A stretch of 64,000 nucleotides of DNA from the NCBI GenBank assembly GCA_002269645.1, contig NIVC01001900.1, positions 124,001 to 188,000 on the forward strand, in the 5' to 3' direction. The translations under genes and the position numbers were made by a program. The stretch is from Macrostomum lignano. Its lineage: Eukaryota. A model generated the notes under the pieces. The model did not search any database, had not been told where the DNA came from, and saw only the letters and a list, made by a program, of their open reading frames with translations. This document shows positions 951 to 64,000 of this stretch, one piece after another. How positions within the stretch are numbered: position 1 is the stretch's first letter; each line of letters begins with the position of its first letter.

Positions 951-2621
951 ATGAGCCTTGGACACTCCAGCGACAGCTCGAGTTCGGACGCGACTCCCGC
1001 TTCCCCAACTCCTCTCTGCATCATCTGCGACCAAGCTGTAGTCGGTGTGGCTCCGTTCTCCCGCTGCCACATGTGCAGTCAACACCTCAGTGTCGATGTG
1101 GCCAATCTATTCAAGCTCAAGGAGGAGGTCGAAGAGCTGCTGCGTGCCTACTCACAAGAGTCACAAGAGTCACAAGAGTCACGAGACTCACAAGAGTCAC
1201 AAGGCGCAGCAGGTGCAGCTGGCCGTGCAGCGCTGATGCGACACCGACAAGACGCTGAGTCGCTGCGTCGTCTCGCTCTCGACATCCAACAGCAGCTGCA
1301 AGAGGTCAATCAAAAATTCGATTTGGTACAGCAACACATCGACTCGTTTCGTAGCAGGGTGACGGGCCAGCTCTCAGGTGTGCTTGAGGCAGTGCGTGTG
1401 TGCGAGCGGGACCTCGAGGACGTCTCCAGCTACAAGCAGGAGGTGGCCACGGCGGAGGCTGCAGGCGACATGGCGGAGCTGCTTCGCCTGGTCCAGTCCA
1501 TGCACGAATCGCTTGGAGACTTGGAGGCCGACTTTGAGAGGTCAGAGCGGCTGCTCAGAGACCAGAGCGACAATGAGGAGCTGCAGGTGCGGCTTCTGGG
1601 CCAGCTCGAGCGGCTGGTCGGCATTTGTGCGGGACGCAGTGAAGAGGGCGACTGGTTGAGAGACGCTGCGGTGACCGCGACATCCGAGGAGATAGACGCT
1701 GCTGAGAAAGAGAGACTGCTGTTCGATCCGATGGTCTTCAGTCACGAGGTGAAGCTGTATGTCCTTGTTCAATGGTTGGCTGTGTGCAGCGACACCAGCG
1801 GATTTGTTTGTGACCGCTCAGGCCGTGTGGTTCCCGCCGATTCAGCGGGAGACCGCAGAAAACCTCTGCCTCAGCCCTGCATCTTTGCATCATTCTATTC
1901 CAACAATAACCACCTACTGGTGCTGTCTGTGGACGGCTCACAGAAGCTGCGGTGCCACTGCGACATTGACTGGAAGAATTTAATCTGGGGCCTTCACTGC
2001 GACCGTCAGCTGCTGTTCATTGCTCAGTGTGACGCAGTGACAGTGACGGACCTGAGCGGTCGCGCAGTTCGTCGAGTCCGCCCACACATCGAGGGCTTCG
2101 GTGACATCTGTGGAATCGGCGGCAACGCAGCCTCCGTGTTTGTGTCCAGTGGAAACAAAATTGCTGCATTCAGCAAAGCGACTTGGCGGATGGAGACGGT
2201 CATCACGCTGTCTCAGCTTCCTCATGCTGATCTGTGCAGCCTGAAAATTCATGATAACTGCATTCTGGTGACAGACTGGGGGCACAATCAGGTGCACAGA
2301 GTGCGCATCGACACCCAGCAGCTGGTCGCCTCCTTCCCGACTCAGCGTTCCGGCCTCCAACAGTTTGCTGGTCCAAGGGATGTGGCCGTCGACAGCAGAG
2401 GCCGCCTGTTCGTGAGTGAATTTTTGGGTCACTCAGTGCGAGCGGTGGCTGCAGACGACGGGTCGCTGCTGTGGACTCTGGGGACTCCGGGCGAGAGCGG
2501 CAGCGGAGACGGTAGATTTAGGTATCCAAAGTGTCTTGCGGTGGTCACGGGAGGTCCGCGCGAGCAGCTGGTGGTGGCTGACAGTTTTAATAGCAGACTG
2601 CAGGTGTTCAGTGCATCCTAA
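951..2621 (+). CDS. G1: RING-less TRIM-NHL-like protein (B-box-like Cys/His motif, coiled coil, NHL propeller), 556 aa
   Basis: CIIC-x12-CHMC-x2-H motif; heptad-rich coiled coil; C-terminal NHL consensus repeats (FAGPRDVAVDSRGRLFVSE; FRYPKCLAV...VADSFNSRLQVF); AATAAA at 2638-2643. Confidence 0.9.
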   Translation: MSLGHSSDSSSSDATPASPTPLCIICDQAVVGVAPFSRCHMCSQHLSVDVANLFKLKEEVEELLRAYSQESQESQESRDSQESQGAAGAAGRAALMRHRQDAESLRRLALDIQQQLQEVNQKFDLVQQHIDSFRSRVTGQLSGVLEAVRVCERDLEDVSSYKQEVATAEAAGDMAELLRLVQSMHESLGDLEADFERSERLLRDQSDNEELQVRLLGQLERLVGICAGRSEEGDWLRDAAVTATSEEIDAAEKERLLFDPMVFSHEVKLYVLVQWLAVCSDTSGFVCDRSGRVVPADSAGDRRKPLPQPCIFASFYSNNNHLLVLSVDGSQKLRCHCDIDWKNLIWGLHCDRQLLFIAQCDAVTVTDLSGRAVRRVRPHIEGFGDICGIGGNAASVFVSSGNKIAAFSKATWRMETVITLSQLPHADLCSLKIHDNCILVTDWGHNQVHRVRIDTQQLVASFPTQRSGLQQFAGPRDVAVDSRGRLFVSEFLGHSVRAVAADDGSLLWTLGTPGESGSGDGRFRYPKCLAVVTGGPREQLVVADSFNSRLQVFSAS

Positions 2622-3407
2622 TTTTATTCACAGGCCGAATAAAAATCGAACTGCAGGGTTTCTGGAGTGACTGATTTGTTGGAGGCCGGGTTTTTGTTGA
2701 ATTTTTTATTACTATGGAATAATTACCATGTGATTAACTTCTTTGTCTGATAATTGTTTATCATGGCCAGTGTATTCAGAATTGATATTTAATTGAATAG
2801 AAACACACTAAACATTTTGCATGCATTCAGTAATTATATTAAAGTAACGTTTGCCCTCAACACTTCTCTCATTGTTTTTCTTTTTCTGGTAGTTTCAGCA
2901 CCAGAAATTGGGACTGCACTGTTGAATTGAATTTCAGCAAACACATTTGGTTCCTGTGCAACTTTTCCTGGAAATTTCTTATCATGCTGTGCCGAATTAA
3001 ACTCCAACTTTTGATTCTCAAGCCGTTCATTTCTCAGTTTGCATCTGATGCAATTTCTCTTTTAACCACTTCAACTGAATTCAAAATGATTTTTTCTCCT
3101 AAACTATATTCAGTCGTAAAATTTGTTTAGCAAATAATTATTTGGAGGTCAAGAATGAGTCGAGTCGAACCCGGGTCAGTTCGGAGAAATGGATCGCCAC
3201 AAGTCACGTGACAATTCAATTGATGGGAACTGCTTAAGGAGATCGGGGCCACAATTGCTGATTCAGAACAAAATAACGGAGGTTGGGGTGGGCGAAAAAG
3301 GAGTGGGTGGGTGCAAGTGGTGAGTCATCGCTAATTCATTGAAAATTAGTGAGTGGCTGCCAAAAGCCGCTGCTGCATCAGAAGCTGAGGGACTTTAACT
3401 GACGTCA

Positions 3408-3711
3408 TGCTGCATAGCGACTGCGGCATGATTGCCAATCAGACATGCTGCATAGCGACTGCGGCATGATTGCCAATCAGACATGCTGCTTAGCGACTGC
3501 GGCATGGTTGCCAATCAAACATGCTGCATAGCGACTGCGGCATGGTTGCCAATCAGACATGCTGCATAGCGACTGCGGCATGATTGCCAATCAGACATGC
3601 TGCATAGCGACTGCGGCATGATTGCCAATCAGACATGCTGCATAGCGACTGTGGCATGATTGCCAATCAGACATGCTGCATAGCAACTGCGGTATGATTG
3701 CCAATCAGACA
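3408..3711. repeat. 38-bp minisatellite (tgctgcatagcgactgcggcatgattgccaatcagaca) x8
   Basis: 304 bp = 8 x 38; near-identical units, no spacers. Confidence 0.95.
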
Positions 3712-3890
3712 TGACAGCAGCTGATTGATCGAATTGCTCACAGAATTCATGCCTGCTGCTCTCAGTGACCAGAGAGCTCACAGAATTCATTCCAAGCAAA
3801 AGCAAAAAGCAAAAGCAAGTAAGCAAAAGACAAAATCTTGTTCTTATTGAGTGATGCAGAATGGAGAACTGAAGCTGAACGAGAAGAATG

Positions 3891-4188
3891 TGTTGGGGTT
3901 GTGCTTTGGTTTTTCATGTTGTTTCACTTGTCTCTCTCTCTCTCTCTCTCTCTCTCTCCCGTGACTGATCATTCTTGCGCGCTATCGTTTTACCCCTACC
4001 TGTGTACATTTGTGCTTGCCAGTGTGCATGGTTTTAACCCACAGCCAATCGGATGGCGTTTGTCTACTAATGTACGTGGTTTCGTGTTATGTAGTCAAAT
4101 AAATACTTTCGTCACTTCGGTAGAGATCTTTCAATGGTATTCTCCTTCGCTTGCAAACATGACTTGACTCAGTTTTCCTAGACCAACA
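3891..4188 (+). repeat. 5' LTR of element 1 (298 bp)
   Basis: TG...CA termini; matches 8083-8376 apart from (CT)n length. Confidence 0.95.
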
Positions 4189-4191
4189 TTT

Positions 4192-4209
4192 TGGCGTCGC
4201 GAGCAGGAT
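4192..4209 (+). promoter_or_regulatory. Primer-binding site TGGCGTCGCGAGCAGGAT (probably tRNA-Ser type)
   Basis: Starts TGG 3 nt after the LTR; complement ends ...GCCA and resembles tRNA-Ser 3' ends. The tRNA assignment is inference. Confidence 0.75.
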
Positions 4210-4210
4210 C

Positions 4211-7200
4211 ATGAGCATCAAATTGAGAGAGACGCTGCCGTTGAGCAATATAGATGAGCTTCGCGCCTGGGTTGAAGTATTTGACGCCCAGGCCAGATCC
4301 AAAGGAGTCGAAGATACCGACGAGAGACGAGCGCTGACCGACGCTTTCATGGGCTGCCTCGGGGTCGCTGAGCTCATAAAAGTCAAGCAGCTGGTTGCTC
4401 CAAAAACCCCGTCTGCGATGAAATGGTCTGAAATCAAGCAATGCCTACTGGCGTTTGTGGAGCCCAAGAAGAAACTGCAGATCGCTGAGAGGACAGCCTT
4501 CATGTCTATGCGCCAGGCCGAAGGCGAAACCGTCACCAGCTATGCCGCTCGTCTCAGGGAGCAAGCCGTCGTATGCGAGTTCGAGAGCCTGATAAAGGAA
4601 GGAGCGGACCCCGCCGAAGCGCTCATCAAGATGCGGCTCATTGCCGGTCTGGCCAACTCGAACATCAGGAACAAGGTGCTCGAGCGTGAAGTTACTCAAG
4701 AACTGACGGTCGATCAGGTCACAGAATATGTTCAGCAGCTGCTGATGGTCAGCAACTTTTCAGCTGGGTCCCAGGCTGCTGCTCACTCGACTCTCGTGGA
4801 TTCGGTGGTGCACCAGGCTAGGTCGCTGTCGACCGCGGGTCTGACTACGGCTGATGAAGCTCACTGCCATCCGGATAGCTCCGGCTCTGTCAACGTTAAT
4901 TCGGTTATGAGGCAGAAGCAGAACTTCGGACACCAGCGCTGTCAGCGTTGCGGGTTGAGATCGCACCAGAAGCCCGCTGACTGCCGAGCCCTGAGAGCCA
5001 CCTGCAATCAATGTGGAAAGCCTGGCCACTTTGCCCGTGTGTGCCGCGGTGCCAGGACCCACTTCGCTGCCCCAGCTGAAGCAGTCGGCACTCAGCTGAG
5101 TCCAGAAGACTCCTATCGTGATGAGCCCGTTTTCTACTGTGGAGAAGGAAAGCCTGCCGAGTTCTGCACTGTGAAAATCAATCACAGAGAAGTACTGATG
5201 GAGAAGGACAGCGGTGCCTCCTGCTCGTTAATCTCACGAAGGATCTGGAATGAGCTCGGAAGGCCCCCGCTGAAGTCGGCGAAGTCGCGCATGCTGGCGT
5301 ATGACGGACACGTTATGAGACAGATGGGCGTTCTGGAATGCCTGGTGGAGACCACTGGCAACATCGGCCGCTTCAAGGCGGCAGAGCTGCCCGTCATCGA
5401 CTGCCAACAGGAGTTTGGGCTGCTCGGCCGGAATCTGCTGGTCCTCGCACCGGTGCACCATGCCAGTTCTGATGAGTCAGCCGCCAGCAACAGGTATGAG
5501 AGCTTGTTGGGAATATCTGGTGTTACGGGAGAAATCCGTCTTTGTGCTGGAGCTAGGCCAATTTTCCAGGCAGCCAGAGAACTGCCCTTAGCGCTGAAGC
5601 ACTTGGTTAAGAAGGAGCTGGACCTGATGGAAAGTGCTGGAATCGTTGAGAAGGTGATGTCGTCGGAATGGGGCAGTCCAATTGTGGTGACGGTGAAATC
5701 AGATCGGGCATCCGTGAGAATTTGTGGAGATTATTCGGCTGTTAATCGGTTGGTTCAAGACCAGACCTTCCTCACTCCCTCGATTGAGACAGCCTTTTCG
5801 AAAATGGCCAACAAGAAGCTGTTCTGTCGGTTGGACCTATCGGATGCGTACTATCAGGTTCCCCTGGATGAGGAATCGAAAGCGGTGACCACCATAAACA
5901 CTCCGTTTGGTTGCTACAGGTTTAACCGGTTGCCGTATGGCATTAAGGTGTCGCCATCTGTTTTTCAACGTGTGATGGAAAAGCTCCTGGGAGACCATCC
6001 ATGTGTCATAGTATATCAGGACGATGTGCTGATCGGTGCTGCGAGCCGGGCAGAGTTGCAGAAAATTAGGGAGCAGGTGCTCAACAAGTTAAAGGCCGCA
6101 AATGTCAAGATCAACGAGGCGAAGTGCGTGATGGAAGCCAACAGCCTGAAGTTTCTTGGTCACATTATTGATGATGAAGGAATAAAACCCGATCCGGGCA
6201 TGGTGAAACGTGTGATGGATGTCGAGGTGCCGAAGACCAAGAAAGATTTGGAGAGATTTCTAGGACTGGCTCAATTTTATGGACGGCTGGTTCCAAACTT
6301 TTCTGAGAAATGTCGGCCTCTTCAGGAGCTTCGCCGCGGTGACCGGGTCTTTGAATGGAACGCGGTGGCTGAGGCGGCATTTTCGGAGGTCAAAAGGAGT
6401 CTGGCCTCAAACCCGTGCATCAAGCCGTTTGATGTTTCCGCGCCTGTCTGTCTTCGAGTTGATGCGAGCGAGAAGTCCTTGGGCGCGGTGCTGGTCCAGT
6501 CTGGACATCCCGTCATGTTCATGTCCAGGGCGCTCACACAGCAGAAACCAACTACTCAAACATCGAGAGAGAAGCGCTGGCTATTGTTTGGGCGGTTGAA
6601 CGAGCTCGGAAAATGTTGCTAGGGAAGAAATTCATTCTGCAGACCGATCACGAGCCTTTGAAGTTTATTCTGAATCCTTGCAAGAATCTTCCAAAGACTG
6701 TTTCTGCCAGACTAACCCGGTGGGCTCTGCGGCTATCGGCTTATGATTACGAGATTGAATATGTGCCGGGAAAGAAGATGCAGGATGCTGACGCTCTATC
6801 AAGGCTGAGCTTTGAAAACCTCGATCCTGAGACGGAGTCTGTTCATCAGACTGAGTTGATCACTGACGGAGGCTTGGTTACCGTGGAGGAGCTGAGAGAA
6901 AGTACTTCCCGGTGTTCACTGCTTCAAAGACTCCAGCAGAGAATCAGGACAGGCCGGTGGGGTCAGGTCTCTCAGCTGGAGCGGCCGTACAAAGCGTGTC
7001 GGGAAGCGTTGTCTGTGGAGAACGGGCTGGTCATCCACGGTACCAGGGTGGTGCCTCCGACCATTCTCCGGCGGCGCATTTTGGAGACCGCGCATGATGA
7101 GGTGCACCCGAGCGCGGAAAATACGAAGGCCCATGTGTCTAAGGAGTTCTGGTGGCCTGGACGGGATCGCGATGTCCGTCAGTTTGTTGAGCGGTGTCAA

Positions 7201-8029
7201 CTGTGCGCTGAAAGACGGCCGGTGGTTCAGCGGAAAATTGACATCTGGCCATCCGAGAGCGAGCCGTGGTCCCGGGTCCACATGGACCACTGTGAGGTGC
7301 CAGGAGTGGGCTTGCTACTGTTGCTGTCTGATGCATACTCGGGATGGCCAGAAGCTAGTGTCGGATAATGCGCCTGAGTTCAGGTCGGAAAGAGTCTCGC
7401 AGTGGCTGAACAGTGTCGGCTGCCAGGAGATGCACACCCCACCGTACCATCCGGCATCGAACGGGCAGGCTGAGCGGTTGGTGAGGAGTCTCAAAGGCGG
7501 GCTGAAGACGTGGACGAAAGTTGTGCCATTTGACCAGTTCCTGCAGAAATTGCTCCTAACCATTCGCACCAGCAGGCCTAGCGGGAATCGTTCCAGCTCG
7601 CCGGACATTCTCATGTGGAGACGCCGGCTGCGCCATCCGCTGACGATGACCGAGCAGGTGGGTGACTCCATCTGGCTGAGGGCTCGGCCTGGCACGGCTC
7701 CGGTTCCGGCCAAGTTCATCGTGCAGCACGGCCGGAACACAGCTCTGGTGACCTCAGCTGACCTACCAGACGGTGGACTGCGGATGGCGCACGCAAACCA
7801 ATGGAGCTGCCGCCCGGAGGCGGAGGCCGATCGGCGGCTGACCGAGGCGGCTGGATCCGAGGATCAGGCTGGGCTATCGATTCCGGGTGCCAAGGCTGGC
7901 TCTGACTCGGAGCTGCGTGAACCTGAGGTGACTGACTGTGACTCCCCGCTGAGTTCTGGAGATGAGACTCTCCAGCCCCAAAGCTCGTATGATTTGCGGC
8001 CTCGTAAACCTGTTTGTTATAAGGTCTAA
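4211..8029 (+). pseudogene. gag-pol: gag-pol of element 1, interrupted (frameshift about 6540; deletion/frameshift about 7350)
   Basis: Tandem Zn knuckles (CQRC..H..C, CNQCGKPGHFARVC), protease DSGA, RT YQDD, RNase H VDASEK...TDHEPL, integrase H-H-C-C, D (HMDH), D (SDNA), E (QAERLV); split over ORFs 4211-6622, 6613-7368 and 7094-8029. Confidence 0.92.
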
Positions 8030-8082
8030 GGACAGGTCTTGGTTTCTTTTGTTTTTTGTTTTTCTGCTTTTGGGGGGAGCAG

Positions 8083-8376
8083 TGTTGGGGTTGTGCTTTG
8101 GTTTTTCATGTTGTTTCACTTGTCTCTCTCTCTCTCTCTCTCTCTCCCGTGACTGATCATTCTTGCGCGCTATCGTTTTACCCCTACCTGTGTACATTTG
8201 TGCTTGCCAGTGTGCATGGTTTTAACCCACAGCCAATCGGATGGCGTTTGTCTACTAATGTACGTGGTTTCGTGTTATGTAGTCAAATAAATACTTTCGT
8301 CACTTCGGTAGAGATCTTTCAATGGTATTCTCCTTCGCTTGCAAACATGACTTGACTCAGTTTTCCTAGACCAACA
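8083..8376 (+). repeat. 3' LTR of element 1 (294 bp)
   Basis: Direct repeat of 3891-4188, preceded by purine tract GGGGGGAGCAG. Confidence 0.95.
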
Positions 8377-8380: not shown

Positions 8381-8660
8381 GGCACCGAGGACTGGCAGGA
8401 GGGGGGCGGCACTGAGGACTGGCAGGAGGGGCGGCACTGAGGACTGGGAGGAGGGGAGGCACTGAGGACTGGGAGGAGGGGAGGCACTGAGGACTGGGAG
8501 GAGGGGCGGCACTGAGGACTGGGAGGAGGGGCGGCACTGAGGACTGGGAGGAGGGGCGGCACTGAGGACTGGGAGGAGGGGCGGCACTGAGGACTGGGAG
8601 GAGGGGGAGGCACTGAGGACTGGGAGGAGGGGCGGCACTGAGGACTGGGAGGAGGGGCGG
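8381..8660. repeat. 25-bp G-rich minisatellite (ggcactgaggactgggaggaggggc), about 11 copies
   Basis: Visible periodicity; paralogous array at 21538-21924. Confidence 0.9.
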
Positions 8661-10227
8661 CTCACCCCCAGCTCACAAGTGCTGCAAATTTGACTGTGTG
8701 AACATTCGATCCCGGCTGAGCAACTCAACAATACAAAATGCTCGCTTCTGCTCTGCTCAGTGCAGATTCGGTCAATGTTTACTGAAGTTTCTGCAAAAAT
8801 AAAAATTACTGCTGTCATAGTTTGAATTTGTCTGAACTCAGCCAATTTATTATTTGGTAAGTTTGCCAAAAGTTTTGAACTTCCGGCAAGACAGACAGGA
8901 TGCAAAGAACACAAATGAATGGTATGAAAGTGCAACTCATCTCTGAATCATCTGTCATATTCATTCCCAGCTGTGCACCCCATGCGTGGGTCATTGTGCA
9001 TTCTGACAGCCTGACATTCACTGCCACTGGGGCACTGAATTCCAATGAACAAATTCTCATCAGCTGTTGCTGTGAAGAATTCGCACCTGGTAGGTGATTT
9101 GATTCGCTTGGCTGTCTACTTTCTCTCTCTACTTCTCTGCCTACCATCTGACCCTGAGCACACGTTGGTGGTGAGTTCTCGCCACCGATTTCCAGCTCAC
9201 TAAACTGCGAGTCACTTTTGTGTGCGACTGCAGTCTCAGTGCTGAGTTGCCTCTGTGACTGACAGTTGGGGCCTGGATCCACTTGAGACAGCTGGTTTCT
9301 TAGAAATTATTTGAAGGCCTGCCTTGTGTAAAAATATGCATATGAAAAATGCATCCACATATAGCTTTGCATGCGACTGCAGAATCAAATGCTTGTGTTG
9401 AACGCAGTTTTTGTAGTGAAATTAAACCCAATTAAATATGTACACCATTAAATCATAAAGCTGCTTATAAATGACTGATAAACCCGAAAGTTTATCTGCT
9501 TCTATAAAAAGATTTTGATGACCCTCAAATCAATAGTTTTCCTCATTTCCGCTCTTCATTTTTCACTCATAGCCAGCCTTCAAATATTTTCTAGGAAACA
9601 CACGCAATGATTTCCCGTCCATATACTTTTAGTCGTCCTTGGTCCCACTGCAAGTCTGCGGGGTGACAAATTCCAGTCAGGTGACGAACTCAGGTGAGTC
9701 TGGCATGCAGCAAACACTGAATGCAGAGTTCAAGCAAGGACCACTAGAAATTAGCTATAGAAGGCCAGTGTAATGGGCATACAGGCCTAAGAAGAAAAGT
9801 ATAAGCTGTTTATGGCAAGTTGGGATGCAATGCAAAAATAAAAATATTGATTAGTGCATTTAAAATAATATATAATGCAGCTAGTAGCAGAAAGAAACGA
9901 GAAACTGCTTGTTTTTGCTTCATTTTTGCACGATCAAAATGCGCGTGCTATGCTGTAACAGGCCTTTTAAACTTCGACGAGTGTTACGTCCTTGTAGTCT
10001 AGAAGTCCTTGCATATTTCTTAGGCATCGCCAGTCCATTTAGCACTCTGGAAAAACGGTGTTTCAGTGCTTTAAATTGCTCGAAAAAAGACCATTGTGGT
10101 TATGAAGGTCTTCTTCTGCAGCCAACGCGCGGCAGACAAATTCAGTTTAAAAAACCAAACTTTTTGAGAACATGTACTGAGAATATTAATTAAAAAATTA
10201 TAAACATGTTTAACGTGGCCAATCCTT

Positions 10228-10812: not shown

Positions 10813-11390
10813 GTGGTTCTTGATAGTGTAAGTCTCACAGCTCTCTGCCCTCATCGCACCTTCTCTCTCCCCACTCATTTCTCAGCCAGCAGTCTCCATT
10901 GTTACTGCAGGCCGCTCTGCACACGCGAGCTTCATCGCACAGCTGCTGGCAAAGTACACCAGACCGCAGGCTGCACACACAGAAACGGAATGAGAGGCGC
11001 AGAGACTGCAGAGCTCAGCTGAGTGCAGCAGGAGTTGCCAGCCAGACCAACTCGGTCTCCGATGCACATTTCCAACATCGAATAGCGAGAAATTCGAATT
11101 TCGCACCGCTGCACAGACAAACAAAGTTAAATTAATAATAATCTGCAATAGAAAACTCACCCACAACAGGTACCTGTGTGTGCTCAGTAATTTCTCAGAC
11201 TGAGCATTCTTGCAGCTGCAGAGATGCAATTCTGTGACCTGCGATACTGGCACCGATTCAAAGTGTGTGGCCCACTGGATTTGCAGAGCTCAGCAGCCTT
11301 GCACTGGCAGCAGAGGATATTCAGCCAAGAATTCCTTGACCAGCACTGAACTCCCTGACTCGAAATCTGACTGCACTTCGCATTTGACAG

Positions 11391-11611
11391 GTGAGTCGGA
11401 TTGGAATGAGGCTGGAAATGCCTTGAAATCTGCTTTGCTGATCCCACTGTGCATTGAGCACTTCTGCCTTCTGCTCCCTCTCTTCTCCCTCTCTTCTTCT
11501 CTCTCTTCTCCCTCTCTTCTCCCTCTCTTCTTCTCTCTCCTCTCTTCTCACTCTCTTTACCCTTTCTTCTCTCTGTCACTACGTTAGTTTTTAACTTCAT
11601 CTACATTTCAG
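11391..11611 (+). other. Predicted 5'-UTR intron of G2
   Basis: CAG|GTGAGT donor, CT-rich tract, TTTCAG acceptor 21 nt before the ATG. Confidence 0.6.
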
Positions 11612-11632
11612 CTCATCACAGACACTGCAACA

Positions 11633-18120: not shown

Positions 18121-18172
18121 CTATATAACCAAATCCCAATGTTACCTAATGCTAAACAGCATCTGAGTGAAT

Positions 18173-50800: not shown

Positions 50801-50912
50801 TGCTTGCAGGCGCTTGAGCTGACCCCTCAGGCTGCTGCTGCCTGCCCCTCCCGCCTGTTCTGCGAACGCGTGCGCGCGAGGGGCCTCCCCTCTGCGTCCT
50901 AATATATATAAT
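47820..50912 (+). mobile_element. Decayed RTE-clade non-LTR retrotransposon, copy 2 (boundaries approximate)
   Basis: Near-identical to copy 1; retains VAGDFNS and SDHRLV of the APE but has lost the RT core (junction gacttttgcaagg|aacgttttt at about 49910). Confidence 0.85.
50151..50640 (+). mobile_element. Nested LOA/R1-group 3' fragment (duplicate of 16907-17396)
   Basis: Same insert with TSD at 50138-50150 and 50641-50653. Confidence 0.8.
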
Positions 50913-51455: not shown

Positions 51456-51506
51456 TATATAACTAAATCCTAATGTTACCTAATGCTAAACAGCATCTGA
51501 GTGAAT

Positions 51507-51576
51507 GTCACTGGGCCAATGTCAGTGGGCCAATATCACTGAGCCAATGTCACTGGACCAACGTGACTGGGCCAAT
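51507..51576 (+). promoter_or_regulatory. 5 x 14-bp CCAAT-containing repeat upstream of G6
   Basis: Same as 18173-18242. Function is inferred. Confidence 0.45.
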
Positions 51577-51890
51577 GCCCATAACGCATAAGCAACTGAT
51601 AGATCAGACCCTGCTGGCAAAAGTGATCTTCCGTCCCCCTGGCCTTCCAGGCCTCGCACAGAGCCAAGCGCACAGGTGCGTCAGATAACGCAGTTGCTTT
51701 GCGAACTCTGCAGCAGGCAGATGCGGTCTCTGGGCTGCGGACGGTCACCTGCCCTGTGCCAATGTAAACTGTGCGACCCCACCCATGCTGCAGCTGCCGC
51801 TCGCGTACATAAAAGTCAGACCTGTACGAAAATAATTCAGTTTTCGTTTCTTAATTAAAGAAATAAGATTTCAAAACCTGCGGTACTGCA

Positions 51891-53519: not shown

Positions 53520-54363
53520 TTTTATTCACAGGTCGAATAAAAATCGAACTGCGGGGTTTCTGGAGTGACTGATTTGTTGGAGGCCGGGTTTTTGTTGATT
53601 TTTTTATTACGATGGAATAATTACCATGTGATTAACTTCTTTGTTTGATAATTGTTTATCATGGCCAGTATGTTCAGAATTGATATTTAATTGAATAGAA
53701 ACACACTAAACATTATGCATGCATTCAGTATTTATATTAAAGTAACGTTTGCCCTCAACACTTCTCTCATTGTTTTTCTTTTTCTGCAAGTTTCAGCACC
53801 AGAAATTGGGACTGCACTGTTGAATTGAATTTCAGCAAACACAATTGGTTCCTGTGCAACTTTTCCTGGAAATTTCTTATCACGCTGTGCCGAATTAAAC
53901 TCCAACTTTTGATTCTCAAGCCGTTAATTTCTCAGTTTGCATCTGATGCAATTTCTCTTTTAACCACTTCAACTGAATTCAAAATGATTTTTTCTCCTAA
54001 ACTATATTCAGTCGTAAAATTTGCCATCCAGCTGTGAGTGCTTTTAGGAGTATTACAATAATTGCTTAACTCCCGAGAGAGACGTCGGTTGTGGCCCTGG
54101 CATGGAGGTTAAGGGTGAGTCAAACCCGGGTCAGCTGGGAGAAATGGATCGCCACAAGTCACGTGACAATTCAATTGATGGGAACAGCCTACTGAGACCG
54201 GGGTCATAAATGCTGATTCACAACAAAATAACGGAGGTTGGGGTGGGCGAAAAAAAAGTGGGGTGGGTGTAAGTGGTGAGTCATCGCTGATTCATTGAAA
54301 ATTAGTGAGTGGCTGCCAAAAGCCGGTGCTGCATCAGAAGCTGAGGGACTTTAACTGACTTCA

Positions 54364-54629
54364 TGCTGCATAGCGACTGTGGCATGATTGCCAATCAGAC
54401 ATGCTGCATAGCGACTGAGGCATGATTGCCAATCAGACATGCTGCGTAGCGACTGTGGCATGATTGCCAATCAGACATGCTGCATAGCGACTGCGGCATG
54501 ATTGCCAATCAGACATGCTGCATAGCGACTGCGGCATGATTGCCAATCAGACATGCTGCATAGCGACTGCGGCATGATTGCCAATCAGACATGCTGCATA
54601 GCGACTGTGGCTTGATTGCCAATCAGACA
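54364..54629. repeat. 38-bp minisatellite x7
   Basis: 266 bp = 7 x 38. Confidence 0.95.
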
Positions 54630-54779
54630 TGACAGCAGCTGATTGATCGAATCGCGGGAACTGCACGATATTTTAAAATCAGCAAATGAAGACACGACCT
54701 GCTTTAGAAATAATTATTTCGATTTTTCTATTGGAAAATATTCTACGGAACATGCAGTTAGCAATCCGGAGCAGATGCA

Positions 54780-57572: not shown

Positions 57573-60500
57573 TTAAACCCTATAGTTCACTCTCACCTTG
57601 GCCTCTCGGGGGTGTGGTCGCAGCGCAATTGGAGAGGTCGCGGGTTCGCTCCCTGCAGCTTGTAGGATCGGAGGTGCGGGCTCCCCGACAGGAAAATCAG
57701 GCTCAGTATCCGGCGCTACTCGCTTCAGGTCGGTGCAGTGTCGCCTGCAAACTCTGGCGCCCTGCCGAATGGTCATCGAGTCGCCCTTGACCTTCTCGAC
57801 CAGCCAGGGTGCCCACTCGAACGGAGTCTCGCCCTTGAGCGGATTTAGTCGGCGCCGCAGCACTGTGTCACCGACTTTGAGACCGTGCGGTCTCGCCTGC
57901 CGTTGCTTGTCGGTGTAGCGCTTGCCCTTTGCCTTGCTGCTGGCGTCCTGCTGTCGGAGCCTCCTGTCCACGATGGCCACTGTTCTCGACGGCTTGACTG
58001 ACGGGATGGCGTCGTTTGGGACGCGCCCCATGAAAAGCTCGGCTGGTGCCCGGTTGGTGGTTCGCTGCGGCGTGCAACGGTAGGCCAGCAGCCACTCATC
58101 AAGGGCTGCCCTCCAGTCGCTCTTCTGGGCAATGGCAGCTCGTACAACCTTATTGATGGAGCGGTTCAGGCCCTCGGTGATGCCGTTGGCCTGCGGATGC
58201 AGCGGTGTGATGAGACGCTGCCGGATTCCGTAGCTGTCCAGAAAGACTTTGAACTTGGCCGAGGAGAACGGCGGGCCGTTATCTGTGACCAGTACCTGCG
58301 GGATGCCGAATCTGGCGAACGAATTCCTCAGCTTGGGAATCAGCGCTTCGGTCGTTGTGGTCTGGACGATCTCGACCTCAGGGAAGCGCGAGTAATGGTC
58401 GACGCAGACGAGCAGCATGTTGCCTTGAATGGGGCCCAGCAGGTCTGCCCCTAGCGTTAGCCATGCAGCTTTCGGGATTGGCGTCGGCTTCAGCGGCGCC
58501 GCGGTCGCGTCGGCTTCAGCGGCGCCGCGGTCGCGTCGGCTTCAGCGGCGCCGCGGTCACGTCGGCCGCGTGCGACGTTGCTGCACAGGCTCGGCACGCA
58601 CGCACAAAGAGCTCCGCTTCTGTCTGCATCCTCGGCCACCAGACTTTGGTGTTCAAACGGTCAACCGTCTTGCGCATGCACTGATGACCACGGTGTGCCA
58701 GGTCCAACACCAGGCGCCGAAGCGCCGTTGGAACTACGATCCGCTGGTCCCGCAGGAGCACGCCGTCCGCTGCCGATAGCTCGTCCCGTAGGGCGTGAAG
58801 CGATCGCATCTCCGCCGACTCGAGGCTCCATCGTCCTGTCTCCAGCGATCGAATAGCGGCTTGAATTGTTGCATCTTGCAGCGAACTCTCTTGCACTAAG
58901 GACAGCGACAGAGCGTTCGGTATGGCCGCCTGGACAGTTGCTGCGATGCAGAGGGTGTCGAGCTCCTCGCCGACATTTCTTCCTCGTGTTGGCAGCGGCT
59001 GCTGGCTCAGCACATCCGCTGGGTTTAGTGGGCTGGTATTCGACTGTGAATTTCATGTTCTGAATGCGCAGCGCCATTCTTTCGATCCTCGGGGGAGGCC
59101 TTGAGCGACTGCTGAACAATGCGATGAGCGGCTTGTGGTCCGTCACCACCGTAAATGTCGGGGCGCCGTGGAGGTAGTACTGAAATTTCAAACAGCCGTA
59201 TTTGACTGCCAGCGCCTCCTTCTCAGTCTGGGAGTAGCGCTGCTCGACACCGGACAGCGTCCGGCTGGCGTACGCAACGGGCCGGTTGGTGCCGTCCGCT
59301 TGTGTCTGCGTTAGAATCGCGCCCAGGCCCGCTGGGCCGGCGTCGACGATGAGTTGCGTCGCTAGGCGGTGGTTAAAGGAGGCGAGGGTGCCGCTGGTCG
59401 CAATCAGGGTCTTGACGTCATCAAAAGCTCGTTTCTTGAGGTCGGTCCATGCCCAGGGCTCGCCTTTTCTAGTCAGATTGCGCAGCGGCTTCGCTACGTC
59501 CGCCAGCCCGGGGGTGAATGAGGCCAGATAGTTGACCAGGCCTAGAAACGAGCGCACCTCTGTGACGGTCTTTGGCTCGGCGAATGCGTGGATGGCCTCC
59601 AGCTTGGACTGGGTTAGTCTGACCCCTTCACGAGACAGTCGCATCCCCATGAACGTGACCTCGGTACGGGCGAGCTTGCATTTTAACGGATTTAGCGTCA
59701 GCCCGTGCTGCGCCAGTCGTCGAAGACATGCCTGCAGGTTGCTGTGGTGCTCCGCCACGCTGTGCCCATACACGATGATGTCGTCGTGAATCCATTTTAC
59801 TTTCGGAAGTCCAGCTAGCACGGATGACATGACCGCCTGGAGAATTTCCTGGGCCGTAGACAGTCCCATACAGAGCCGTGTCAGCCGCCGCAGGCCTCGT
59901 GGCGTCGAGAAAGTCAGAAGATGGCGGCATTCGTCGGCGACTGGGATTTGATAAAATGCCTTCGTGATGTCGAGCTCTGAGAATAGCTGCGCCCCTGCCA
60001 TGTCTCCCGTCACCTCCTCGAATGTCGGGATGGGATGCCGCTCTCTAATGACCGACTTGTTCAGGTCTCTCAAGTCTTGCGTAATCCTGATCTCGCCCGG
60101 AGTCTGCTTGGGCACGACGACGATGCGAGCTACCCACTGACAGGGGCCTTCAACCGGCTTTGGTCCTCGAGGCACTGCAGCTCGGCGTCGACTGCCTGTG
60201 CGAGATGTATTGGCACCCTTGATGGGGGATGACAGACCGGCCTGGCTCCCTCTTCCAGGAAGATGCGGGCGAAATAGTTTTTGAGCCTGCCGATTCCGCT
60301 GAAGACTTGTGCGTTCTCCGTCAGGAGTTCGTCCAGGGCCGGTGCCCCTGGCGCATGTAGGACTTCCTTTGGGATCCATGCTAGCATGCTGTCTAGCGAG
60401 ACCTCAGGAGACGGACGCAGCTGGCATGCCACCTTGTTCTCTGGACCGACTCGCAGAATCTGAAGTCTTTCAGCGCTTCTCCGGCCAATGATGCAAGCGC

Positions 60501-61640
60501 CCTCACCGTCGAGCACCAAGAACGGTAGTGTCTCGTGGATCTCGAACACGCTGACTTGCAGGTCTGCCTTGCCCAGCAGTCTCAGTGGCTCTTGGCTTCC
60601 GTACGGGTAGACCTTGTCGCTGGCAGGCTGCAGCGCGGCTTTTTGCGGCATCCTGTCGTAGGCTGCCCTGTCGGTGATGTTGCAGGCCGCGCCGCTGTCG
60701 ATGAGCACATTTGTCTTGAGCCCGTTAATGGCCGCAGGCGTCCAAGCTGAGCCGCAGTTCCGCAGGGGGAATAGCTCGTGCTCTAGGGGGTCGTCCTGCA
60801 GATATTCGACTCGACCCGGCGGAGCGCCCTCCTGCGGTTCGTCAACGGTCCTCAGAGGGACTTTAGCTGCTCCTCGACACGCCCGAGCGAAATGACCCAT
60901 CTTTCCGCAGCGTCGACACGCTTTGTTACGGGCTGCCTCGCACGTCCGATGTCCTGGCCGCCCGCAGCGATCGCAGTTAATGCCGCTGTCTCTTGCCGCG
61001 GCAGCCGGCCTGGGTGAATGCGACGGTCGGTTACGAGGTGGGCGCAGCGCCGCCACATTTGAAGCGGCAGGATGGCCCGTGTCGGCTGCGGTGCCGATCT
61101 CAATGGCCTGGGCCTGCTGCTCCGCTGCCTCCCTCGCTCGGATTCGCTTCATAACGTCGTCCAAGGAGACATCGTTGAGCTGCAGGAGTTCCCTCCTGAT
61201 CCTCTCGGACCGGTAATGAGCCACGATCTTGTCCCTGATGAGCGAGTCTCGGAGTTCGCCGGATGTGCATTGGTCCGCAGCCTTGCGTAGCCGACGGTAC
61301 CAGGCCTCAATTGACTCTCCTTCTTCCTGCCGGCAGATTTCAAATTGGTACCTGAGGAAGACAACGCTGTTCTTTTGGTCGAAGATTCCCTGCAACTCTT
61401 TGATGAGCTCCTCCGCGGACTCTCCTTTCTCCACGCCGTTATCGTCCATAAGTCTTCAACCTTCTCGCCCGCTGTGTAAACTAAGAGTTCGAGCTGCTGT
61501 GTTGCATCTGAGATGCCGGCTGCGCGTATGTAGCTGTTGAACCTTCGCGTCCAGGTTTTCCATCGCTGAGCTCTTGTCAGAGGATCGCCTTCGAGGTCAA
61601 AGACGTCTGGTGCCGCGAGTTGCAGGGCCTGTGCCATATT
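57573..61640 (-). pseudogene. gag-pol: gag-pol of element 2, multiply frameshifted
   Basis: gag (RWKTW..F; CDRC..H..C; CRRCGKMGHFARAC), PR IDSGA, RT WIHDD, RH VDAG...TDHKPL, IN H-H-C-C, D (GADL), D (TDNG), E (ITEGLN); breaks near 61450, 60165, 59030 and 58481-58558. Confidence 0.92.
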
Positions 61641-61690
61641 TGCTGAATCACCGGTCGATATCAGTGTGCGGGGGGTGGGCCTCACTGAGA

Positions 61691-61883: not shown

Positions 61884-62423
61884 GAGTGCAGCTTCTTTCT
61901 CCATCGTAGTGCAGACTGGAAGCGGATCATCAAAAGTGCAGCCAGTAGCAGAGCCAGTGCACAGCTTGTGAAGCACTATGAATGTAAAATTGCTGAAAAG
62001 GGCGGCTCTCTGCCCGCTGAGCACCCCAGCTGCTTAAACTGGGGATTGAGAATCAGTAGTGTTCAACGCCTGCACAGGACAGACAGACGGGGAGACAGAA
62101 GCTCCATTGTCCCTTGCGACAGGCTGCTCAGCACCCACTGTGAGCACCTGAGTAGCTTTGAGCTGATTTGAATTTTTTACTTTTTAAGCATTATAACAAA
62201 AACATTTTCCCTAACATCATACAATGAAAAAAAATTTACATGTAGCCTCGTTTGATTGTTTTTACTTTACGTATTATAAAGCATCTATCTGCCATGAAGT
62301 ACAACTTCACAGCCGTTTCCTTGGAAGACAGCACCAATTTAAGCAGATCTAAATGTAATGCTTGATTTTGCCGAAGCACTACCTATTTAATATTTTCAAT
62401 AACAGGAAACTTCCTCACAAGCA

Positions 62424-64000
62424 ATGAGCCGCAGAAGCTCCAGCGACAGCTCGAGTTCGGACACGCCTCCCGCTACCCCAACTCCTCTCTGCATCATCTG
62501 CGACCAAGCTGCAGTCGGTGTGGCTCCGTTCTCCCGCTGCCACATGTGCAGTCAACACCTCAGTGTCGATGTGGCCAATCTATTCAAGCTCAAGGAGGAG
62601 GTCGAAGAGCTGCTGCGTGCCTACTCAAAAGACTCACAAGACTCACAAGAATCACAAGAGTCACAAGGCGAAGCAGGTGCAGCTGGCCGTGCAGCGCTGA
62701 TGCGACACCGACAAGACGCTGAGTCGCTGCGTCGTCTCGCTCTCGACATCCAACAGCAGCTGCAAGAGGTCAATCACAAATTCGATTTGGTACAGCAACA
62801 CATCGACTCGTTTCGTAGCAGGGTGACGGGCCAGCTCTCAGGTGTGCTTGAGGCAGTGCGTGTGTGCGAGCGGGACCTCGAGGACGTCTCCAGCTACAAG
62901 CAGGAGGTGGCCACGGCGGAGGCTGCAGGCGACATGGCGGAGCTGCTTCGCCTGGTCCAGTCCATGCACGAATCGCTTGGAGACTTGGAGGCCGACTTTG
63001 AGAGGTCAGAGCGCCTGCTCAGAGACCAGAGCGACAATGAGGAGCTGCAGGTGCGGCTTCTGGGCCAGCTCGAGCGGCTGGTCGGCATTTGTGCGGGACG
63101 CAGTGAAGAGGGCGACTGGTCGAGAGACGCTGCGGTGACCGCGACGTCCGAGGAGATTGACGCTGCTGAGAGACTTCTGTTCGATCCGATGGTCTTCAGT
63201 CACGAGGTGAAGCTGGATGGCGATGTTAAATGGCTGGCTGTGTGCAGCGACACCAGCGGATTCGTAGGTGACCGCTCAGGCCGTGTGGTTCCCGCCGACT
63301 CAGCGGGAGACGGCAGCGAGGCTCTGCCTCAACCCTGCATCCTGGTATCATACTTTTCCGATAGAGACCATCTACTGGTGCTGTCTGTGGACGGCTCACA
63401 AAAGCTGCGGTGCCACTGCGACATCGACTGGAATAAGGACATTTTTGGCCTTCACTGCGACGGTCAGCTACTGTTCATTGCTCAGCATGACGCAGTGACA
63501 GTGACGGACCTGAGCGGTCGCGCGGTTCGTCGACTCAGCCCACAAATTCGGGGTTTCTGTGGTATCTTGGGAATCGGCGGCAACGCAGCCTTCGTGTTTG
63601 TGTCCAGCGGAAACAAAATTGTTGCATTCAGCAAAGCGACTTGGCAGATGGAGACGGTCATCACGCTGTCTCAGCGTCCTGATGCACGACTGCGCAACCT
63701 GGCGACTCACGACAACTGCATTCTGGTGACGGACTGGAAGCACAATCAGGTGCACAGAGTGCGTATCGACACCCAGCAGCTGGTCGCCTCCTTCCCGACT
63801 CAGCGTTCCAGCCTCCAACAGTCTGCTCATCCAATTGATGTTGCCGTCGACAGCAGAGGCCGCCTGTTCGTGAGTGAATTTTCGGGTCACTCAGTGAGAT
63901 CGGTGGCTGCAGACGACGGGTCGCTGCTATGGACTCTGGGGACTCCGGGCGAGAGCGGCAGCGGAGACGGCAGATTTTGGCATCCATGGGGTCTGGCGGT
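62424..64000 (+). CDS. G7: TRIM-NHL-like paralogue, 3' end beyond the window
   Basis: ATG AGC CGC AGA start after an AACAG acceptor; collinear with G1-G6 and reaches ...FWHPWGLA at the window end. It is absent from the ORF track because no stop is reached. Confidence 0.88.
   Translation, partial: MSRRSSSDSSSSDTPPATPTPLCIICDQAAVGVAPFSRCHMCSQHLSVDVANLFKLKEEVEELLRAYSKDSQDSQESQESQGEAGAAGRAALMRHRQDAESLRRLALDIQQQLQEVNHKFDLVQQHIDSFRSRVTGQLSGVLEAVRVCERDLEDVSSYKQEVATAEAAGDMAELLRLVQSMHESLGDLEADFERSERLLRDQSDNEELQVRLLGQLERLVGICAGRSEEGDWSRDAAVTATSEEIDAAERLLFDPMVFSHEVKLDGDVKWLAVCSDTSGFVGDRSGRVVPADSAGDGSEALPQPCILVSYFSDRDHLLVLSVDGSQKLRCHCDIDWNKDIFGLHCDGQLLFIAQHDAVTVTDLSGRAVRRLSPQIRGFCGILGIGGNAAFVFVSSGNKIVAFSKATWQMETVITLSQRPDARLRNLATHDNCILVTDWKHNQVHRVRIDTQQLVASFPTQRSSLQQSAHPIDVAVDSRGRLFVSEFSGHSVRSVAADDGSLLWTLGTPGESGSGDGRFWHPWGLA

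Follow-up and report, generated by a model that had tools for sequence, protein, structure and literature searches.

The window, the 64,000 nucleotides of Macrostomum lignano contig NIVC01001900.1 that we analysed, contains seven intronless gene copies of approximately 550 codons each, all on the + strand, in agreement with the seven-copy NHL array described in the first-pass annotation. Of these, four are intact and two are pseudogenes; the seventh is truncated by the end of the window:

951-2621, + strand: copy c1, intact open reading frame, 556 aa
3406-3713, no strand: 38-bp minisatellite, about 0.8 kb downstream of the c1 gene
11633-13294, + strand: copy c2, intact, 553 aa, without an entry in the public protein collection
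18557-20251, + strand: copy c3, pseudogene with two frameshifts
26155-27801, + strand: copy c4, intact, 548 aa
37182-38519, + strand: copy c5, 5' part, pseudogene
38520-43318, + strand: LINE retrotransposon inside c5, with endonuclease, RT and RNase H, and a (GTAA)n tail
43319-43653, + strand: copy c5, 3' part
51891-53519, + strand: copy c6, intact, 542 aa
62424-64000, + strand: copy c7, open through codon ~525, where the window ends

Only c1, among the four intact copies of the window, has an annotated protein in the public collection, being an exact match to P0001 on a 223.7-kb M. lignano contig. The lesions of c3, seen as alignment gaps, are losses of 1 bp after 18974 and of 5 bp after 20106; c5 bears a 7-bp insertion at 37984-37990 and is split by the 4.8-kb LINE insertion, which is bordered by a 13-bp target-site duplication (ATCAGGTGCACAG). 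With two of the seven copies dead, turnover is high, and such relics could be the source of part of the diversity described below. A 1161-aa open reading frame starting at 24316 and running over c4 was discarded as an artefact: the satellite upstream of the gene happens to be open.

Duplication reaches beyond the genes. Copy c6 sits within a 6.3-kb stretch that duplicates the c3 unit segmentally, and the 38-bp minisatellite belongs to the duplicated unit, recurring at 21036-21381, 32675-33137 and 54362-54631. The locus is also crowded with transposons. We counted at least 20 family copies in the ~190 kb of DNA examined, plus at least 10 further subfamilies, each below 50% identity, all of them from M. 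lignano except for one metagenome cluster. The array belongs to a superfamily that is larger and specific to Macrostomum; this superfamily, the two pseudogenes and the gene conversion between copies were all missing from the earlier reading.

Domain organisation of the encoded proteins

Three regions can be delimited in c1:

1017-1085 (codons 23-45), + strand: Cys/His motif, C-x2-C-x12-C-H-x-C-x2-H, from an alignment of 11 subfamilies
1077-1634 (codons 43-228), + strand: predicted helical, coiled-coil-like stalk (AF2)
1728-2618 (codons 260-556), + strand: NHL beta-propeller (AF2, Pfam, PDB profile)

Pfam recognises NHL in c1 with 29 bits, the cut-off being 20, and a profile search of the PDB leads to Thin and TRIM71 (E ~1e-20). 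The AF2 model of the propeller (pLDDT 91, pTM 0.90) superimposes on the NHL domains of Thin, TRIM71 and LIN-41 with a TM score of 0.75-0.78 and an RMSD of 3.3-3.5 Å, compared to 0.62-0.65 and more than 7 Å for seven-bladed WD40 proteins; the modelled fold matches the six-bladed TRIM-NHL propellers. The first blade is divergent, with seven short strands in region 262-344 and hence a putative extra hairpin in blade 1, and the internal blades are unlike one another (self-alignment probability 4.8%).

The constant coiled-coil stalk claimed in the first-pass annotation corresponds to a constant N-terminal half predicted to be helical: AF2 gives three long helices (H43-79, H87-171 and H174-228; pLDDT 50-70), almost identical across copies (pS 0.034, pN 0.019). 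The B-box placed on this stalk could not be demonstrated, given that Pfam (zf-B_box) yields no match in c1 at E <= 1 and the superfamily profile yields none against the PDB at E <= 10. What remains is the Cys/His motif, in a region with AF2 pLDDT below 50. Its superfamily-wide core, C-x2(4)-C-x14-C-x2-H, keeps four zinc-ligand positions: across the 11 aligned subfamilies, C23, C26 and C42 never vary and H45 reaches at least 90% conservation; judging from this pattern, it may be a degenerate half B-box. The Pfam search of c1 returned no RING either, as had been anticipated. The proteins have no signal peptide, and hence are intracellular.

Site-specific selection on the propeller

All variable residues quoted by the earlier reading are present. 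From c1 to c7, these are W/C/H/L/R/H/F in blade-2 Ix; G/R/E/K/R/M/K in blade-4 DWx, with the correction that the motif of c2 is DRR and not DWR; AGPR/VWPI/VWPK/VWPK/AGPV/AYPK/AHPI in blade-5 FxxPx; FL/HL/FG/WW/YL/FL/FS in blade-5 SExx; and RYPKC/NRPWG/RGPWG/RGPKG/EYLSS/RGPWG/WHPWG in blade 6. The multi-base codon swaps are real too: 52% of pairwise comparisons at selected codons differ at two or three bases, against 3.4% at other propeller codons.

Site models on the whole propeller of 13 copies gave a 2dlnL of 395 for M1a/M2a, 424 for M7/M8 and 390 for M8a/M8, with 8.4% of codons at omega 10.7, bearing out the suspicion of dN/dS above 1 (omega ~11 at ~8% of propeller codons). The seven copies of the window alone (M1a/M2a 2dlnL = 161) recovered the same sites, and both values put the pattern far outside what chance would give. 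Called at an M2a/M8 posterior above 0.95 (above 0.8 for 441 and 444), the selected sites of c1 are:

1764-2594, + strand: span holding selected codons 272, 274, 300, 316, 317, 344, 346, 360, 387, 425, 427, 429, (441), 444, 474, 476, 491, 492, 524, 525, 545, 546 and 548 (codon n starts at 951+3(n-1))

At these sites amino acids differ pairwise by 0.81, compared to 0.13 in the remaining propeller. Tyr (10x), Trp (3x), Cys, Arg, His and Lys are over-represented there, a usage that resembles, by analogy, that of binding hot spots.

Such a signal could in principle arise with no adaptive diversification at all, from exposed loops under relaxed constraint in a decaying, redundant family whose omega is inflated by gene conversion, multi-nucleotide mutations or alignment error. 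Two of seven copies are indeed pseudogenes, and selected sites 300, 316 and 317 adjoin indels. Moreover, site models assume a single tree and no recombination; recombination is demonstrable here and known to inflate their likelihood ratio tests, which are therefore liberal. Giving each of seven blade segments (30-52 codons) its own tree mitigates this problem without removing it, and under these conditions all segments were significant (2dlnL 20-100) and returned the same sites. Neutral decay would also predict an omega of ~1 and not ~11, and 53% of propeller codons have an omega of 0.13. Pairwise nucleotide difference is ~0.5 per site at selected codons compared to ~0.07 at nearby 4-fold sites, and the loops of the opposite face hardly vary despite equal exposure (mean entropy 0.23 vs 0.73). 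We consequently disfavour this explanation as quite improbable; site-specific diversifying selection on the propeller is supported by the pattern of codon change.

The selected sites are found in alternate inter-strand loops, together with residue 2 of the strand after each: 22 of the 23 lie in odd-numbered loops, +/-2 residues (Fisher p = 2.4e-7), and even loops from 352 onward have none. They are therefore on one face, an assignment based on the secondary structure prediction, on loop parity and on a single aligned residue of TRIM71. The aligned residue is c1 G474, which the profile alignment pairs with TRIM71 R796, located within the RNA-binding groove and contacting the hairpin (PMC6719626). 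More generally, variable positions flank the conserved Pro preceding the inner strand of the blade, which are the positions of R608/R796 in the TRIM71 RNA groove. The selected face is homologous to the top, RNA/ligand-binding side of the TRIM71 propeller, in line with the canonical NHL ligand face named earlier. The claim that variation is confined to this face holds for the 22 sites yet not for some variable tracts elsewhere, namely codons 3-6, a SQESQE-coding microsatellite (codons 68-84), the linker 250-257 and an indel-rich loop at 296-309.

Exchange between copies and the origin of diversity

Recombination among copies was detected with PHI (p < 0.0005). As an example, the nearest neighbour of c3 changes along the gene from c6 to c4 and back to c6; the VWP loop motif recurs in c2, c3 and c4, and RGPWG in c3 and c6 as well as in two copies from the other contig. 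The copies are mosaics through gene conversion, and the N-terminal half is nearly identical because conversion homogenises it. The near-invariance of silent sites reported earlier applies to this half (4-fold diversity 0.019-0.035) but not to the blades (0.067-0.074), the silent diversity of the propeller being 2-3.5 times the coil value.

This exchange brings to mind a dedicated mutational mechanism as the main source of diversity, in place of selection acting on ordinary mutations. Candidates would be templated micro-conversion drawing on a stock of (pseudo)gene cassettes, known from chicken Ig and trypanosome VSG, targeted hypermutation, or something akin to DGRs. Blade-sized segments have been swapped between copies, a pseudogene included (c3, with its c4-like tract), identical loop motifs reappear in different combinations, and reverse transcriptases lie nearby. 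However, conversion shuffles variants and leaves their origin unexplained, the reverse transcriptases near the array are assigned to ordinary LTR, DIRS and LINE elements, and a template repeat was not seen. There is no mutational halo around the variable codons: 4-fold diversity beside them is 0.035-0.04, not above the propeller mean of 0.07, and interleaved codons, such as P475, are invariant. Finally, in 16% of pairs the variable codons are different at all three positions, and their changes show no preference for particular bases, unlike the adenine-directed mutagenesis of DGRs. We hold a mechanism of this kind to be improbable.

A candidate recognition repertoire

The array proteins share with TRIM-NHL proteins (TRIM71/LIN-41, TRIM2, TRIM3, TRIM32/Thin and Brat) the C-terminal fold, the sequence family and the order of zinc motif, helical stalk and NHL propeller. 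They differ in having no RING, no demonstrable B-box and a divergent first blade region with extra strands; Brat too is devoid of a RING. While TRIM-NHL genes are conserved, low-copy 'group 1' TRIMs (PMC2533329), the array is species-restricted, multi-copy and at omega ~11 on its predicted binding face. In this it resembles class IV TRIMs with hypervariable B30.2/SPRY domains (TRIM5alpha, fish finTRIM, btr and trim35/hltr), proposed to sense or restrict viruses. They too come as multigene arrays in which the N-terminal module is constant, positive selection is concentrated on loops of the C-terminal ligand-binding domain and copies recombine (PMC3137616). Those are vertebrate-specific, retain RING and B-box (PMC2533329), and recognise through a B30.2 beta-sandwich instead of an NHL propeller. 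Podospora anserina HNWD (het-d/e/r; WD40, NLR-like) also uses a beta-propeller for recognition, a role that is putative here, and its paralogues likewise combine concerted evolution with diversifying recognition specificity (PMC2873952). The HNWD propeller is a WD40 on a STAND NTPase, diversified largely by shuffling near-identical internal repeats, whereas exchange here is between paralogues at equivalent positions. The array would be analogous to the B30.2 domains of TRIM5/finTRIM and to these fungal propellers.

Nematode F-box and MATH-BTB adapters are likewise large lineage-specific intracellular families under strong positive selection. There, selection acts on the substrate-binding domain, the effector-binding domain is conserved, and pathogen proteins are the proposed targets. 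Their folds are unrelated and they couple to cullin ligases, a link that is not evident for the array. For F-box genes, strong positive selection is reported in C. elegans wild isolates (PMC8120010).

An allorecognition system, one option of the first-pass annotation, would fit HNWD: mechanistically the nearest analogue to have a hypervariable propeller face, it is itself an allorecognition family (PMC2873952). Yet the proteins are cytosolic, and the diversity observed is between paralogues in one inbred-line assembly, not allelic polymorphism. M. lignano is moreover a solitary, non-fusing animal, and we deem self/non-self recognition very improbable.

The same repertoire might instead be driven by reproductive conflict, with the proteins evolving under sexual conflict or sperm competition as regulators of RNA or protein at the germline or gamete stage. 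M. lignano is a standard model of this kind of conflict, TRIM-NHL proteins such as TRIM71 typically regulate germline or stem-cell mRNA, and the selection signature is blind to the kind of antagonistic partner. NHL-2 is reported to act in the C. elegans germline (PMC6351104). Nevertheless, nothing ties the genes to gonads or gametes, intracellular proteins speak against direct gamete-surface recognition, and many-copy combinatorial arrays are more typical of defence families (PMC3137616). This leaves reproductive conflict unlikely, if worth keeping in view.

We regard with moderate confidence a conflict-driven recognition repertoire of RING-less TRIM-NHL relatives as the best reading. The array would encode paralogues of a Macrostomum-specific protein made of Cys/His motif, helical stalk and six-bladed propeller. 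The copies arose by segmental duplication; conversion or unequal exchange keeps stalk and propeller framework near-identical and reshuffles blade segments; and about 20 codons on one face change amino acid approximately ten times faster than silent sites. Each paralogue would then offer a binding surface of its own on a shared scaffold, probably dimerised by the stalk as in TRIM proteins, and together they would constitute a germline-encoded repertoire of intracellular binders tracking fast-evolving ligands. The most likely ligands would be RNAs or proteins that stem from genetic parasites, be they viruses or the transposons crowding the locus, with other antagonistic partners also possible; RNA binding is extrapolated from TRIM-NHL proteins. 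Since they have no RING, the proteins would act by binding, sequestration or, as in Brat, translational repression, and not by intrinsic ubiquitin ligation.

We found no prior description of such a hypervariable NHL array in the searchable literature, and NHL is a domain without a known role as an arms-race recognition repertoire. Tandem, near-identical intracellular genes whose differences fall almost exclusively on about 20 residues of one propeller face are the pattern expected of such a repertoire.

Seven gene copies and the distribution of their variation

Searches with the c1 gene (tblastn and blastn) located seven copies in the 64-kb window, all on the + strand and with intronless coding regions. 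The state of each was read off the nucleotide alignment and the translation of that alignment.

Copies of the gene (c1 to c7) in the window
951-2621, + strand: c1, intact
11633-13294, + strand: c2, intact
18557-20251, + strand: c3, pseudogene with 1-bp and 5-bp deletions
26155-27801, + strand: c4, intact
37182-38519 and 43319-43653, + strand: c5, pseudogene interrupted by a 4.8-kb LINE and carrying a 7-bp insertion
51891-53519, + strand: c6, intact
62424-64000, + strand: c7, reading frame open until the window ends

Turnover is thus visible within 64 kb, two of the seven copies being pseudogenes. The protein of ORF 951-2621 is a 100% match to an annotated M. lignano hypothetical protein (GCA_002269645.1, NIVC01001900.1, 223.7 kb), and c1 is the only one of the four intact window copies with an annotated protein in the public collection. 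The intact ORFs of c2, c4 and c6 (542-553 aa) are missing from that collection and apparently unannotated in the deposited genome. We rejected an assembly artefact because different transposons and satellites separate the copies on a single contig.

For the analysis of variation, a 13-sequence codon alignment was used, to which five other loci in this genome contribute eight intact copies. The first-pass annotation had described an NHL array varying only on the ligand-binding face of the propeller (the C-terminal NHL domain, c1 codons 260-556), and all the residue strings that it quoted were found in the translated alignment. Nei-Gojobori estimates were pS 0.034 and pN 0.019 for codons 87-255, and pS 0.11 and pN 0.093 for codons 256-556. 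Five or more different residues occur at 28 positions of the 13 sequences, 22 of them in the propeller. Pairwise amino-acid difference was 0.81 at the selected codons (propeller codons with omega >1 in site models), compared with 0.13 for all remaining propeller codons and 0.06 for the helical N-terminal half, or stalk. Multi-base codon swaps, also reported earlier, were borne out: two or three bases differ in 52% of codon pairs at selected codons vs 3.4% elsewhere in the propeller. Confinement to the face was not strict, since codons 3-6, a SQESQE-coding microsatellite, the linker 250-257 and an indel-rich loop (296-309) vary too. The blades had also been taken as almost invariant at silent sites, which did not hold: diversity at 4-fold third positions was 0.067-0.074 in the propeller, and only in the stalk was it lower (0.019-0.035).

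Diversifying selection on one face of a predicted propeller

Site models (M0, M1a, M2a, M7, M8 and M8a) were fitted with our own Goldman-Yang implementation, using F3x4 frequencies, an NJ topology and branch lengths from M0. As the first-pass annotation had predicted, omega exceeds 1 at propeller codons (13 copies; 2dlnL = 395 for M1a/M2a, 424 for M7/M8 and 390 for M8a/M8), with omega ~10.7 at ~8.4% of propeller codons and 0.13 at 53%. Posterior probabilities were >0.95 at codons 272, 274, 300, 316, 317, 344, 346, 360, 387, 425, 427, 429, 474, 476, 491, 492, 524, 525, 545, 546 and 548; sites 300, 316 and 317 adjoin indels and are less secure. The seven copies of the window by themselves gave 2dlnL = 161 and nearly the same sites. 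Because the copies recombine, which can inflate such tests, M1a/M2a was rerun separately on seven stretches of 30-52 codons, with a tree built for each: every one was significant (2dlnL 20-100) and returned the same sites. Neutral decay is disfavoured by the data.

A tree-free comparison gave a nucleotide difference of ~0.5 per site at selected codons vs 0.035-0.04 at 4-fold sites one codon off, and interleaved codons such as Pro475 are invariant. The lack of a silent halo, together with these invariant codons, speaks for selection acting residue by residue and against a mutator working on the whole region; a dedicated mutator is likewise disfavoured. A diversity-generating retroelement (DGR) would need a template repeat, a dedicated RT and adenine-templated variation. 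DGR-like mutagenesis was rejected: variable codons differ at one, two or three positions with no base-specific pattern, the window's RTs are those of LTR, DIRS and LINE elements, and no template copy was seen. Strong diversifying selection on the ligand face is well supported.

The assignment of these codons to a face depends on the fold. Individual Pfam NHL matches (PF01436; c1 29.0, c2 25.7 and c6 32.6 bits, cut-off 20) cover the final one or two blades only, and the Pfam search of the proteins found no domain besides NHL repeats. Against the PDB, the C-terminal profile matched the TRIM-NHL proteins Thin/TRIM32 (E = 1.1e-20), TRIM71 (1.3e-20), TRIM2/3 (~1e-12) and Brat (4e-6). The propeller was modelled by AlphaFold2 with pLDDT 91 and pTM 0.90 (pLDDT ~90 within the full-length model), and the best Foldseek matches of this predicted structure by TM and RMSD were six-bladed NHL domains, those of Thin, TRIM71, TRIM2 and LIN-41, the last also in its RNA complex 6fq3 (TMq/TMt 0.70-0.78, RMSD 3.3-4.7 A overall and 3.3-3.5 A for Thin, TRIM71 and LIN-41). 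Seven-bladed WD40 proteins reached TM 0.62-0.65 with RMSD above 7 A. The model therefore superposes on six-bladed NHL domains, the blade number being taken from TM scores. It contains 26 strands: 24 and one additional hairpin around 262-344, a region with two strands more than a single blade needs, suggesting an atypical first blade. Self-alignment with hhalign gave weak shifts of 41-48 residues (best off-diagonal probability 4.8%), which are not decisive for blade count.

We gave the model's 25 inter-strand loops consecutive numbers and counted a site if it lay in a loop or at most two residues away. The claim that variable sites cluster on one face agrees with the model: 22 of the 23 sites with posterior >0.8 fall at odd-numbered loops, which would lie on one common face because strand direction alternates; site 300 is in an even loop, and even loops from residue 352 on hold zero selected sites (Fisher: p = 2.4e-7 vs all other residues, 2.6e-5 odd vs even loops). 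Mean entropy was 0.73 in odd and 0.23 in even loops. In the HMM alignment, F472-A473-G474-P475-R476 corresponds to F794-L795-R796-P797-Q798 of human TRIM71, whose chain numbering was verified at three arginines. The hypervariable positions flank a conserved Pro of blades 4 to 6 at -1 and +1 (425; 474 and 476; 525 and 527), and the same repeat places hold R608 and R796 (-1) and R751 (+1) in TRIM71. Loop parity and the alignment of G474 with TRIM71 R796 thus suggest that the selected surface is the known NHL binding surface. Selected positions are richer in Tyr, Trp, Cys, Arg, His and Lys and poorer in Val, Ala and Gln, with a net charge of -1 to +6 depending on the paralogue. This residue usage fits a binding surface and is compatible with RNA or protein.

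Duplication, exchange and transposon insertion

Minisatellites at a fixed distance downstream of c1, c3, c4 and c6 define the duplicated unit as the gene plus ~1.3 kb of 3' flank, including 38-bp and 25-bp minisatellites. A gene carried by a transposon was rejected for this reason and for the absence of terminal repeats.

Introns, repeats and transposable elements around the copies
~640-950 and 11320-11632: 5'UTR introns of c1 and c2
3406-3713, 21036-21381, 32675-33137 and 54362-54631: 38-bp minisatellite, 7-12 units
8381-8661 and 21538-21925: 25-bp minisatellite, 11-15 units
3890-8376: Gypsy/Ty3-type LTR retrotransposon inside the 3' flank of c1, with protease, RT and RNase H
24389-26120 (x96, directly upstream of the c4 ATG) and 36929-37154 (x12.6, upstream of c5): 18-bp satellite, GTCTCCCACCTGACCTGA
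27891-31977, minus strand: DIRS-like retroelement with tyrosine recombinase, RT and a gag-like ORF
38520-43318: LINE in c5, with a (GTAA)n tail, RNase H in an ORF of its own and a long ORF2 of 1010 aa for endonuclease and RT
57573-61685, minus strand: another element of LTR type, between c6 and c7, with a gag-like ORF, RT/RNase H and integrase

Copies c1 and c2 have a common 5'UTR intron (GTGAGT, polypyrimidine tract, TTTCAG) ending ~20 nt upstream of the ATG. The remaining copies have unrelated upstream sequence, inter-copy homology beginning 5-20 nt before the ATG, so that promoters differ or some copies may lack one. Global alignments of the 5' and 3' flanks of all copies were misleading, most flanks being non-homologous or broken by transposons, and BLAST segments were used instead. 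They include a 6.3-kb segmental duplication (14488-20755 and 47566-54023, 96-98% identical) that holds c3 and c6. Retroelements of LTR, DIRS-like and LINE type occupy the spacers. The Gypsy/Ty3-type element has a frameshifted integrase region and 299-bp LTRs that are 98.7% identical; the DIRS-like element sits 90 bp past the stop codon of c4 and splits its 3' flank; and the LINE in c5, flanked by a 13-bp target-site duplication, looks recently active. The 18-bp satellite is open on both strands, creating spurious ORFs at 24316-27801 (+ strand, 1161 aa, fused to c4) and 24338-26107 (minus strand, 589 aa).

The NJ tree of the copies is star-like, and nearest neighbours in sliding windows reveal mosaics. 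In c3, alignment columns 721-1260 are c6-like, 1261-1440 c4-like and those from 1561 c6-like again, the c4-like tract (~ codons 420-480) having been acquired, as were the two frameshifts, within the segmental duplication shared with c6. The PHI test was significant (p < 0.0005, 90 informative sites), and the loop motifs VWP and RGPWG reappear in varying combinations across copies. Together, these observations point to exchange between copies, pseudogenes included, that homogenises the scaffold and reshuffles blade segments; duplication with conversion-mediated homogenisation and shuffling is a well-supported mechanism for the evolution of the array.

Within one and the same 1.6-kb ORF, the propeller exceeds the stalk 2-3.5-fold in silent (4-fold) diversity. 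Conversion tracts may be biased towards the 5' half, or conversion may be selected against where it would erase loop diversity; the stalk's lower value would fit conversion that is commoner, or less opposed, there.

N-terminal module, family extent and possible role

A B-box is a zinc finger with seven to eight Cys/His ligands and two zinc ions. The first-pass annotation had proposed a B-box/coiled-coil stalk with no RING, of which the missing RING and a predicted helical stalk hold up; for the B-box, the profile searches gave no support. RING has no Pfam match, the first Cys pair comes after just 22 residues, and the first 60 residues contain five Cys/His; the annotated protein begins at this ATG, and an upstream coding exon is at most a slim possibility in c1 and c2. 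Pfam zf-B_box had no match at E <= 1, nor did the superfamily's N-terminal profile match B-box chains in the PDB at E <= 10. A C-x2(4)-C-x14-C-x2-H pattern is conserved across eleven subfamilies (AF2 pLDDT <50 there), and several members are named 'B box-type domain-containing protein' in UniRef. The spacing of this pattern fits the first and third ligand pairs of the B-box2 consensus, as would suit a half B-box keeping one zinc site. In the AF2 model the first 44 residues are unstructured and helices are predicted at 43-79, 87-171 and 174-228 with moderate confidence (pLDDT 50-70), which suggests a coiled coil linking the zinc module to the C-terminal domain. In every copy, a hexanucleotide-based microsatellite at codons 68-84 (c1: window 1152-1203) encodes (SQE/SQD)n, an acidic linker prone to slippage that joins zinc motif and stalk, and its length differs in almost all copies (0 to 12 extra codons).

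The subfamily has at least 20 copies in the ~190 kb examined; those besides the seven of the window lie farther along NIVC01001900.1 and on NIVC01000200.1, with at least 13 in five other loci. Word-indexed homologue searches returned M. lignano proteins only, plus one weak metagenome match. An exhaustive profile search added ~13 full-length clusters of the same architecture at <50% identity; nine of ten checked came from M. lignano and one from short JGI metagenome contigs. The remaining profile matches were long multi-repeat NHL proteins aligned over their last blades only. One paralogue, ~50% identical, adjoins array members at L004:12787-14211 (contig NIVC01000200.1), which suggests that the young array is interspersed with older subfamilies. 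In the literature searched, we found nothing linking Macrostomum to NHL/TRIM genes or describing these genes, and no report of diversifying selection on an NHL domain.

TRIM-NHL proteins are regarded as low-copy developmental regulators. Their genes are usually conserved (PMC2533329), in contrast to this array, and the known fast-evolving TRIM repertoires, which use the B30.2 domain, are vertebrate-specific (PMC2533329, PMC3137616). The analogues of the array are B30.2 TRIM arrays (PMC3137616) and fungal HNWD propellers (PMC2873952). It resembles the TRIM5/finTRIM type in being clustered and multi-copy, with turnover and omega >1 sites in the ligand-binding domain. Like HNWD it shows exchange between paralogues; however, HNWD genes shuffle near-identical internal repeats within and between genes, whereas the internal blades of the array are divergent (probability 4.8%).

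The observation behind the first-pass annotation stands, and its interpretation as a diversifying receptor repertoire is supported in part. By analogy with the systems above, the family may be a set of intracellular binding proteins that keep pace with fast-evolving ligands, genetic parasites being the most plausible. A role in reproductive conflict is a serious rival. Allorecognition, also suggested initially, is unlikely, being at odds with the known biology of the animal. We regard it as possible rather than probable that NHL propellers were recruited to supply the variable part of an immune-type repertoire, intracellular and germline-encoded, against viral or transposon RNAs or proteins, in which dozens of RING-less TRIM-NHL-like binders would have positively selected top faces and blades recombined by gene conversion between paralogues, with pseudogenes as additional donors.

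Such an immune-type repertoire would be an invertebrate counterpart of TRIM5/finTRIM on an RNA-binding fold. With ~20 hypervariable residues on its top face, in a many-copy array that gene conversion homogenises elsewhere, NHL, a domain able to bind RNA hairpins sequence-specifically, would be the second TRIM-type recognition domain independently turned into an arms-race module. The natural variants would also serve as an existing mutational scan of the ligand specificity of NHL. M. lignano is amenable to RNAi and transgenesis, so the idea is directly testable. Little is understood of immunity and transposon control in flatworms, for whose biology the family would be a candidate system of innate recognition.
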